A stretch of 64,000 bases of DNA from Chlorokybus atmophyticus (GCA_009103225.1 RHPI01003753.1:148610-212609); one strand, 5' to 3'. Counted from the stretch's first letter, positions 44,925 through 48,280 are shown. The notes: generated by a model from the letters alone, not told the origin. Translations and numbers: made by a program.

Positions 44925-45672
44925 GGGCAGCTCAGCTGCTGTCAGTTTTGAGATAGTCTGTGATAGTCAACTGGAGTTGTTAGTGGTAGCGGCGGCATGA
45001 CGGTTGTGGACATTGCCCACTTGAGAGTGGCACAAGTGGCACAAGCCAGTGTATGTAAGTGTGCTGCATGACACGCGGCTGTCCCTCGTTTTGCATACAG
45101 TTCATATTGCGCACATAATGTGATGGTTATGCCGGTGGCTTGCATTATTGATGATTGGAGCCCTTACTACCTGATGTGCACGAGACGTCTCACCTGCATG
45201 ACTTGCCTTCTGGTTTGCAGCTGTGTGTACAGTTGACGTACAAAACATCAGTGCAACGTGCTGTCCAATGTACTATTGTACTATTGTTCACAGAATATTG
45301 TGACGCACAGTCCGTGAGTAATGTGAGCTCATCTGCAGCCTGATTCCCAGCATATTCACAAGTCCTTGATTCCGGCATGGATGGCTTTTGTGTACACAAG
45401 ATGCCACGGGGATGTCATGCATGCATGTGCCTGTGTTGCTCGAGGGTCCCTGTCAGGGCTCACGGAGTGTCTGTGCCAGCATGCAATTCCTCATCATAAT
45501 CAACTGTCTCTTGAAAATACTTTCGCTCTCCCGTGCAAATGCACTGCCTTCACAGGCGCTCTGGGAGAGTGTCTGGGAGACTGACGTGGAGTTGGATGTG
45601 CAGGTGGCTGTTGTGGGTAAAGTCACGCACAGTGTCGTACATAACATCGTGCAGCCGGCGGCGGCGGCGGCG

Positions 45673-47076
45673 ATGCCTTTTGGTTCGCCAACATCACCAT
45701 TCCGCTGGGCGCCGCTGCTGTCCTGCTGCTTGCGGCTGCTGGTCAGGCCTGTGAGCGGCGGCGCCGCTGCTGTTGAGGGTAGAAGGCGGCAGCTGGGCCT
45801 GGACATACACAGCAGGAGGAGAAGGAAGAGGAGCATGGATACACAGCAAGCCACCCTGGCCATGCGCTCCTCCTCCTCCGCCCCCCTGCCAGGACCCCAC
45901 GTGCTTGGCCTGGACGATGGGCCCTGCCGCCGGGGGCAGACGGGCCCTGTGCCTGTCGTCGGCGTCGTCATGGAGGGTGCCAAGGTGGGCTACCCCTGTG
46001 TTGAGGAGACCGTTGACTTGCCTTTGGCACCCATGCAACTGCCACCCATGCAACTGATGTGCACGCCAGACGGCAATTGTGTCTACATGGGTGTTAATGT
46101 GTGCGTGTATGCGTGTATGTGTTGCATGTGCGTACGTGTTTGTGGTTGTGTGCGTGTGGTACTGATAGGACCAAGGGAATATCAATAAGAAGTTCGTACC
46201 TGGGTTGACATTGCGTGCATGCAATGCCAAAGGCCGAGCGTAAAAGATGTTTGTGGTGCTGAGGCTGTCACACATGCACACGCATATGACGCTGCGTCGT
46301 GTGTGTTGCGTACTGTACGCAGCACAAGTGGCCGGTTGCTGCTACGTTTGCTTCATGAGTATGTGTGCGTGACACAGCACAGCACATGGAGTACGTAGCT
46401 CGCACAGAGTTCCCTTTTGACGGTGCCAACGCCACAGAATTTCTATCCTCTTGGATCACGAGCCTGAGACTGTACCCTTCTCTTCAGGCAGGTTGATACA
46501 CCCTTTTGTTCAAATGTATGGTTTTAGAGAGCACTACACTCTAACAACTGAGTAACAACATGGCAGGCTGTTGTCATTGGAGGCGTGACCATTGCTGGGC
46601 TGGGCCTCATTGACATAGTGCAGGTGAGGCTGCAATCAGTGTTGTACATTACAAGGTTGGGAAGCTGCTTAATGAGTGGTGATGCGATCTGCCCAATCTC
46701 TTGACAGCTGGCATCATCAACAAAGCTTCCCGTGCTAGCCGTATCAAGACGCGACCCGGCAAATCATCGACTGGAACCCGCGCTGATCAAAGCCGGCCTC
46801 ATTGACAGGCTGCCTATATTATCAGCATTGCCGCAGCGGTTTGAGGCTCTTCCAGGCAAGTGCGAAAAGGTCGTTGGTTGTATTGCAATTATTGAATGTG
46901 TGGATACTTGACATGTGTCTGTAGGGTTGTATTGCCAATGCGCGGGGTGTGATGAAGCCAAGGCGCGCGCTCTGCTGGCGGCGTGCACGCTCAAGTCCAA
47001 CATGCCGGAGCCTTTGCGGGCGGCGCACATGATCGCGAGCGCTTTTGTCTTGGGAGAATCGCATGGGCGAGTGTGA
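45673..47076 (+). CDS. DUF99 / COG1628 (UPF0215, Endonuclease V-related RNase H-fold) nuclease with an N-terminal transit-like extension, 5 exons
   Basis: Exons 45673(or 45835/45862)-45984, 46383-46487, 46567-46623, 46708-46855 and 46925-47076 splice in frame. The product reads HVLGLDDGP..VPVVGVVMEGAKHMEYVARTEFPFDGANAT..AVVIGGVTIAGLGLIDI..LPVLAVSRRDP..LYCQCAG..KSNMPEPLRAAHMIASAFVLGESHGRV*. This follows the DUF99 motif order GIDDG / GVVMRG / DG.DAT / G..G.N.VD / PVI.V.R..P / PEPLR.AH.IASA..GES.GR. Introns 2 and 4 are GC-AG. Confidence 0.85.
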
Positions 47077-48280
47077 CACGCCCATGTGAGGCTTTTTGTG
47101 GGTACATGTCGTCAAGAGCTCGCATTCATACACGGCACCCAAGTCAACCACTAAACCCAAGTATCGGTTGGTGTCGGTAAGCATGTATCAACATTCTAGT
47201 AGCAAGCAGGTAGATAGTTGACATGTTTTGCCGCGTGCACGTGCCATTCACAACACTAACACAATTGACACGTCAAAACAAGCATGTTGCTATGTTCTGC
47301 ACATGACCGTCATTGATACAAACAAGGGTAAGGCCCTTATTTGTTCGCTAGCTAGGTGACCTGGTCAACATGCATAGGAACTACAAATCCAACAATCAAG
47401 CCCGCGGCATGTGCGTGCGACCCAAACCGTGCAAGGCACAAACTTGCCATGGTCAATAACCACTGCAAACTCGTACGCATAGACAGAGAAGCTATACCCC
47501 CTGCCTTACATAACTACTTGCTGTCTTTCGCTGTTCTGCTTATTAGTAGCCATAGCTACTTTGTAAGATCTGAGGTGTGGAGTTGGTCGATGAGCATGTC
47601 TCACAACTCAGAGACATATGTACGACTCAAATCATTGCTGCCAACAACCGATTCAAGCGAAGCTTATGTAACAGGCCTGTACAACCACTCCCCGCAAACA
47701 GTCAACCTTATGCACATGCATTCTGCTTCATTGCCGGAGTCCACTACATGTGCCGCCAAATGCTTGCAGATAGCCTGGTGACCTGTACACATGTACACAA
47801 GTCCAAAGAACTACTGTGTGCCGAATATGAAACGACGTTGGCTTGCATGGGAAAGCGTGCATACGAGCGAGGATACTCGACAGCATAGTGATGCATGTGT
47901 ACTAGATACTCAGCTACACATGCGCGCGCGCTATGCCGCATGGGTGTACGGAAGTATTCGGAAGTAAAGAATGGATTGCAGTGCTGGGTTCATTACACCA
48001 CCGTGCAATCATGTGTACAAAAGAACATTGTCTTACATCTAGCATCAAATGCTGTAGCTGGTTTCTCAATCTGCGCGCATACACGGTAACTCCACACCAT
48101 GGTTTCGCGTATCACAATGTGTATCATTTACCATTGGAAGAATACTAACAAACTACTAACAAACTAAAATAGCACTTGACTAAAGACAGCTTCTGACAAA
48201 CTGCACTCAACTAAGGACACTTCTGCTAATTTGTACATCAATGTGGTCACAACAAACAATGGCATCTAAGCACAACCACA

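Follow-up and report, generated by a model that had tools for sequence, protein, structure and literature searches.

Endonuclease V is directed at inosine, with incision at the second bond on the 3′ side of the damaged base. The closest described systems for the gene treated here belong to another enzyme family, Endo_dU, which was recognised only in 2024 and was reported to be almost purely prokaryotic (Li et al., 2024; PMC11585767). DUF99 proteins of five members of this family, from Archaeoglobus, a Halobacterium, Loki- and Thorarchaeota and a gammaproteobacterium, were studied, and DUF99 proteins were found to cut 3′ of deoxyuridine both in single-stranded DNA and in the dU-containing strand of duplexes, and to leave dI-containing, AP-site and undamaged DNA uncleaved (Li et al., 2024; PMC11585767). 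In the two enzymes studied in detail, RNA was left uncut and metal ions were not needed, and a D10A/H166A double mutant of the Archaeoglobus protein lost most of its activity (PMC11585767). Eukaryotic homologues numbered only two, both from Rhodophyta and both clustering near the bacterial group (PMC11585767). Cleavage at deoxyuridine, which a preliminary description of the locus presented below had named as a property of archaeal members, is thus borne out by published biochemistry. To call such a gene undescribed in eukaryotes would be an overstatement in view of these two red-algal homologues (PMC11585767).

The locus lies in Chlorokybus atmophyticus, a streptophyte alga, within the window analysed here, i.e., the whole stretch of 64,000 nucleotides taken from RHPI01003753.1. 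On its + strand, positions 45673-47076 hold what is probably a nuclear algal gene derived from a bacterial Endo_dU by old horizontal transfer, with two alternative acceptors for its first intron, the downstream one of which would lead to the enzyme. The interval contains five open segments in two reading frames, and both these coding segments and the motif series quoted in the preliminary description were found at the coordinates that it gave. Joined under the guidance of the nearest full-length relatives, the five exons form a 774-nt CDS that translates into 257 residues. The four spliceosomal introns proposed from the sequence are likewise real, the gene being spliced in runs labelled RNA: a 1054-nt contig from run X1 (labelled “RNA?”) covers 45563-47241 with all four introns removed, zero mismatch and a depth of 123, and further contigs come from run X2; the gene is also present in the RNA runs X3 and X5. 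The features are as follows, each with the evidence on which it is placed.

45563-45672, + strand: 5′ leader of the transcript (start of RNA contig X1 at 45563)
45673-45984, + strand: coding part of exon 1, residues 1-104 (Pfam match, homology, RNA contig)
45985-46382 (frame-preserving) or 45985-46377 (RNA contig), + strand: intron 1, GT-AG (contig joint; frame arithmetic and homology)
46373-46382, + strand: tandem CACAG-CACAG with two candidate acceptor AGs 5 nt apart (sequence, RNA contig)
46383-46487, + strand: exon 2, residues 105-139 (HMEYVARTEFPFDGANATEFLSSWITSLRLYPSLQ; motif III with N120) (homology; the RNA contig starts at 46378)
46488-46566, + strand: intron 2, 79 nt, GC-AG (contig joint 46484>46564)
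46567-46623, + strand: exon 3, residues 140-158 (AVVIGGVTIAGLGLIDIVQ) (homology, RNA contig)
46624-46707, + strand: intron 3, 84 nt, GT-AG (RNA contig)
46708-46855, + strand: exon 4, residues 159-207 plus one base (LPVLAVSRRDPANHRL...RFEALP) (Pfam match, RNA contig)
46856-46924, + strand: intron 4, 69 nt, GC-AG (cag|GCAAGT), phase 1 (joint in runs X1 and X2)
46925-47076, + strand: coding part of exon 5, residues 208-257 and the TGA stop (PEPLRAAHMIASA..GESHGRV, H242) (Pfam, PDB 2qh9, RNA)
47077-47309, + strand: 3′ untranslated region, at least 233 nt (RNA contigs end at 47241 in X1 and 47309 in X2)

The ATG at 45673 is the earliest in-frame ATG on the transcript. Exon 1 encodes an N-terminal extension of ~70 residues, after which come the initial domain strands (PHVLGLDDGP...VVGVVMEGAK), including the acidic pair D81/D82. 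The transcribed leader also contains an out-of-frame upstream ATG at 45596, which opens a 52-codon uORF that runs to 45754 and overlaps the main start at 45673. Two of the four introns, introns 2 and 4, are of the GC-AG type, and both are removed in the RNA contig; the joint of intron 2 has five ambiguous letters, and only the +3 placement combines a known splice type with a preserved frame. An imperfect GT/TG-rich run of low complexity (gtgtgcgtgtatgcgtgtatgtgttgcatgtgcg...) occupies 46085-46165 within intron 1. Unspliced pieces of the locus, introns included, that are 100% identical to the window over 45400-47400 occur in run X4, which carries a different organism label; these pieces probably come from DNA of the same strain, or of the same species, that was filed under a second name.

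Membership in the Endo_dU family (Pfam PF01949, formerly DUF99, UPF0215 or COG1628), which had been proposed from motifs alone, was confirmed by profile searches. When the exons were scanned separately, PF01949 was matched in collinear order, exon 1 (residues 76-102) falling on profile positions 4-31, exon 4 on 87-131 and exon 5 on 142-181. Exon 5 by itself scores 43.6 bits against a gathering score of 32.7, exons 1 and 4 being weaker; it also matches the NCBIfam models PRK00766 and EndoDuHalo, under their full-length cutoffs, and retrieves PDB entry 2qh9 (the UPF0215 protein AF_1433) with an E value of 4e-9. Exon 1 alone, a piece too short for this purpose, gave no match among solved structures. 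An HMM of eight bacterial family members (PF01949), built without the algal sequence, gives the joined 257-aa model a score of 242.8 bits (E 1e-76), and 2qh9 is matched over its full length with 117 bits by a profile composed mainly of three bacterial relatives and the algal exon pieces. BLASTP aligns the algal protein with its bacterial relatives over 183 residues without a gap and at 52-58% identity. Endonuclease V (PF04493) was considered as an alternative assignment and rejected: exon 5 is the only exon to match it, with 12 bits against a cutoff of 23.4 and an E value of 0.17, and with a match so far below threshold the algal protein is not an Endonuclease V.

Conservation of the algal protein was gauged against 172 members of the bacterial clade. 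Of the columns in which conservation among these members is 95% or higher, all 40 carry the same residue in the alga (8, 7, 6, 6 and 13 of them in exons 1 to 5, respectively), and the alga agrees at 58 of the 63 columns conserved at 90% or more. No internal stop or frame defect is present in the in-frame CDS of exons 1-5 apart from junction 1, discussed below. Residues D81/D82 and H242 align with D10/D11 and H166 of the Archaeoglobus protein, if D13 and H169 of the 2qh9 chain are taken to be the native D10 and H166, shifted by a presumed tag of three residues. In the Gly-Asp-Thr of motif III, the algal protein retains G118 and T122, and the Asp is replaced by Asn120. This residue and the GLG triplet had been presented in the preliminary description as substitutions that may alter specificity, a suggestion that finds no support in comparison with the bacterial clade (n = 172), in which both are normal, so that they are clade traits and not changes peculiar to the alga: the motif III Asp position, which is not a defining one in this clade, is held by G in 72 members, D in 64, E in 15, A in 9, H in 3 and N in 3, GLG or GLA is universal, and one bacterial protein, P0099, has an identical FPxDGANATEFL.

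The transcript evidence divides the earlier claim that the exons “splice into a complete protein.” On the one hand, introns 2, 3 and 4 of the X1 contig are exactly the junctions required by the frame and by homology, so that these three joins stand; the bacterial sequences are contiguous over the algal junctions (...PALQAVVLGG...), and the fragment P0064 reads ...AFEALPGLF... across intron 4. On the other hand, the join of exons 1 and 2 is out of frame in the same contig, a problem that the preliminary description had overlooked. The contig removes 45985-46377 as intron 1 (joint 45982>46376, cut +2), with an acceptor 5 nt upstream of the expected one, and exon 2 accordingly begins at 46378 and not at 46383. 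Intron 1 closes with two perfect tandem copies of CACAG, CACAGCACAG, and the X1 mRNA uses the upstream (first) AG, which breaks the frame, while the second CAG of the tandem (46381-46382) is the acceptor needed to keep it. The extra CACAG retained in exon 2 shifts the frame and thereby brings in a stop, TAG at 46396-46398, six codons on. On the X1 mRNA, the ORF that starts at ATG 45673 therefore reads ...EGAKHSTWST and then stops, for a length of 110 codons, and the remaining part of the domain lies in another frame, as a 152-codon ORF from an ATG at 46386, 9 nt into exon 2. A complete spliced protein would be produced only if the second acceptor (46381-46382) is also used, and we infer that such a productive isoform is made. 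This in-frame isoform is absent from the assembled contigs, among which the X1 contig is the only one that crosses junction 1 fully, and assembled contigs keep the majority path and lose minor isoforms. A contig of run X2 crosses the exon 1 junction and ends exactly 4 letters on, where the sequences of the two isoforms begin to differ (CACA|G versus CACA|T), which fits a branch in the assembly graph and gives a weak hint that both acceptors are used.

These observations bear on the possibility that the locus is a nascent or strain-specific pseudogene, in which splicing was captured by an upstream acceptor that had arisen through a recent 5-nt duplication of CACAG, with loss of the enzyme. The tandem looks like a slippage duplication, and the perfection of CACAGCACAG, the use of the upstream AG by the full-length X1 contig at a depth of 123, with the stop six codons into exon 2, the upstream ATG in the leader and the absence of an intact protein from public protein collections would all agree with such a history. 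However, all 40 of the clade-invariant residues are intact, including the 8 encoded by exon 1, and there is no other frame defect. Since the invariant columns have remained intact despite an overall divergence of ~45% and a terminal branch of about one change per site, neutral decay is excluded for nearly all of the history of the gene, exon 1 included; the in-frame isoform must be made unless the frame problem arose very recently, and any inactivation must likewise be very recent. Moreover, an in-frame form could easily be missed in assembled contigs, which lose minor isoforms, and the break of the X2 contig 4 nt after the junction fits a branch between two isoforms. Loss of the enzyme is an unlikely reading.

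The relatives of the algal protein point to a bacterial origin. The closest are encoded by metagenome-assembled genomes (MAGs) of Myxococcota, Gemmatimonadota, Rhodothermota and Spirochaetota. An exhaustive search with exon 5 among 1.84 billion cluster representatives returned 68 proteins, the best at 62% identity, all of them of prokaryotic length (~185-190 aa) or fragments, with no close orthologue. In GTDB, which was searched with one genome per prokaryotic species and a profile of the nearest relatives, all 62 loci found (62/62) were bacterial, mostly from MAGs of Myxococcota or “Deltaproteobacteria,” with others from Gemmatimonadota, Rhodothermales, Spirochaetales, Binatia and Desulfobacterales. 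Two profile searches of a 5.8-billion-protein collection gave at least 120 matches each; the 120 best in each case are prokaryotic and, in the second list, 181-233 aa long throughout, and weaker eukaryotic relatives may rank below them. The in-frame algal protein scores 326.5 bits against the profile of the second search and would rank fifth among the matches listed, yet it is not among them, which shows that the intact algal protein is absent from that collection; the 152-aa ORF scores 269.8 bits against the same profile, just below the lowest listed score. No eukaryote-length relative is found among the best matches listed in the exon 5 search and the searches of the 5.8-billion-protein collection, and the stop-free ORF around exon 1, used as a query for algal or orthologous proteins, retrieved nothing at E <= 0.01. 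A metagenome scan with exon 5 gave one locus at 53% identity, and a query of the ESM Atlas with P0099 gave archaeal and bacterial Endo_dU clusters only.

The best full-length relative, P0003, is bacterial and sits in an operon-like context with adjoining ABC-type permease genes. The start of its Endo_dU gene is overlapped over 4 nt by a cyclophilin-like gene (PF04126; L001:207-1159), an arrangement that suggests co-translation. This PF04126 pairing is not general, as no neighbour recurs in more than 12 of the 61 loci compared, a count that is noisy owing to spurious ORFs in high-GC DNA; the neighbourhoods thus offer no hint of function.

In a maximum-likelihood tree of 134 rows, a branch with 100/100 support and a length of 1.32 unites the alga with 77 bacterial-type rows against 56 others, the named members of which are Nanoarchaeota and Woesearchaeota. 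The algal terminal branch is long (0.99, versus a median of 0.35), and the data do not reject a topology in which the alga is the sister group of the 77 bacterial-type rows as a whole (p-AU 0.51), so that its placement may be nested or sister. Base composition agrees with long residence in the algal genome: the CDS has a GC3 of 0.66, with a GC content of 0.49 in the introns and 0.52 in the window, versus GC3 values of 0.78-0.96 in the bacterial genes, and this lowered GC3 shows amelioration. The old horizontal acquisition put forward in the preliminary description is thereby upheld by the phylogeny and by the lowered GC3; the donor-type clade is bacterial and mostly Myxococcota-like, not archaeal. 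Taken together, the placement in the bacterial-type clade, the fact that the intact protein is unlisted and the restriction of known eukaryotic homologues to two red-algal ones make transfer from a bacterium to the alga, followed by long residence, a well-supported reading of the sequence data.

The same data allow a deeper variant of this history, namely one ancient acquisition in Archaeplastida, common to the red-algal homologues and lost nearly everywhere else, in which case the algal Endo_dU gene might be a relic shared with red algae. The two Rhodophyta homologues likewise fall near the bacterial group (PMC11585767), and the long algal branch attaches close to where the bacterial-type clade begins, and a sister relationship to all sampled bacteria is not rejected. 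Such a scenario would nevertheless require many independent losses, and no eukaryote-length relative appeared among the best matches listed in three large searches (whose listings, of at most 120 matches, were filled by bacteria), so that we consider it rather improbable. It is very improbable that the observed mRNA is itself functional, through the 152-residue ORF (ATG 46386, exons 2-5) acting alone or through two halves that assemble: this ORF does begin 9 nt into exon 2, in the frame of the domain and on the observed mRNA, but it is the fourth ATG-initiated ORF listed on that mRNA, it lacks two strands at the start of the domain as well as D81, which corresponds to D10 (loss of D10 and H166 removes most activity; PMC11585767), and exon 1, read in its own frame, still shows perfect conservation of its domain residues. 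Bacterial contamination of the assembly, for which one could invoke only that the nearest relatives are all bacterial, is excluded for practical purposes by the four introns spliced out in RNA, and is further contradicted by the position of the locus within a 64-kb eukaryotic window, a GC3 far under that of the bacterial genes and a best identity of only 58%.

Under the preferred reading, that of a captured bacterial gene with two acceptors for intron 1, a bacterial Endo_dU gene (PF01949) would have been taken up by the alga long ago and would since have acquired four spliceosomal introns, a lower GC3 and the N-terminal extension of ~70 residues. Its frame-preserving mRNA would be translated into 257 residues, among them all those that are strongly conserved in the bacterial clade; judging by homology, this protein would nick DNA 3′ of deoxyuridine and start an alternative uracil excision repair. 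A dU-specific nicking endonuclease, acting as the starter of such a pathway, is thus the most likely function of the algal protein; among the assayed enzymes, none was identified in the Myxococcota-type subclade sampled, the published bacterial enzyme being from Gammaproteobacteria. Intron 1 would be spliced at either of two CAG acceptors, which lie 5 nt apart. Use of the upstream acceptor, dominant in the X1 contig, would lead to a truncated 110-aa product, and use of the downstream one, which presumably also occurs, to the enzyme. With both acceptors in use, much of the transcript would be unproductive.

The N-terminal extension is absent from all bacterial relatives. Its composition is biased: of 72 residues, 12 are R, 10 S, 9 L and 7 A. 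Acidic residues do not occur before position 35, and an RRRRKR patch at residues 49-54 is directly followed by a second Met at 55. These features would suit an organellar presequence but no less a signal for nuclear import or translation from an alternative start, so that organelle targeting of the algal Endo_dU is a plausible hypothesis. One may go further and speculate that the in-frame isoform is made, that the extension sends the enzyme to the plastid or mitochondrion, that uracil in the organelle DNA of this early-diverging streptophyte is repaired there by the bacterial type of nick 3′ of dU and that the output of the enzyme is set by acceptor choice; as a whole, this chain of suppositions is rather unlikely to hold. 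To our knowledge, no plant or algal organelle has been described as using a bacterial pathway that nicks 3′ of dU, and an organellar Endo_dU, provided that the protein is made, would represent a uracil repair route so far unconsidered in plant organelle biology.

Gene transfers from bacteria to algae are common, and the capture of an Endo_dU gene, solid as it is, will not surprise a specialist; the biochemistry attributed to its product is a prediction from homology. The gene is nonetheless a clean and datable case of the capture of a bacterial DNA-repair gene. As an expressed, intron-bearing Endo_dU with its conserved residues intact in a streptophyte alga, it extends the family to the eukaryotes of the green lineage, and this green-lineage member is new since Li et al. 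found two eukaryotic homologues only, both from Rhodophyta (PMC11585767). A search of the literature on DUF99, UPF0215 and Endo_dU found no paper devoted to algae. The 5-nt tandem acceptor adds a small natural test, in which unproductive splicing either throttles a captured gene or marks the first step of its loss.

Among known systems, Endonuclease V has a related RNase H-like fold and nicks near a deaminated base, as is predicted for the algal protein, and differs in that Endo_dU proteins left dI substrates uncut (PMC11585767). The archaeal Endo_dU of known structure (AF_1433, 2qh9) shares with the algal protein the same domain over its full length, the same motif series and the equivalents of D10/D11 and H166. 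In contrast to archaeal-type Endo_dU, however, the algal gene is eukaryotic and nuclear, carries four introns and a ~70-residue N-terminal extension and has an Asn at the Asp of motif III, and its product is only ~30% identical to the archaeal-type members sampled. It also differs from described Endo_dU genes in that its dominant assembled mRNA is out of frame, and its activity is predicted from theirs. The two DUF99 homologues of Rhodophyta are alike in being eukaryotic and near the bacterial group, although they belong to another algal lineage (PMC11585767). The closest counterpart is the bacterial Endo_dU clade of Myxococcota, Gemmatimonadota, Rhodothermota, Spirochaetota and Binatia MAGs (P0099, P0156, P0003; L003-L062). 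Unlike the algal gene, the genes of this clade are intronless, code for 185-190 aa without an N-terminal extension and have a GC3 of 0.78-0.96, and the alga joins them on a long branch that may be nested in the clade or sister to it. Nevertheless, the alga and the clade are 52-58% identical in a gapless alignment, have 40 invariant residues in common and share the signatures RPHxLGxDDGP, VGVVMEG, FPxDGxxATxFL, GGxTIAGLG, RRDPxxHRL and AFEAxPGLY.
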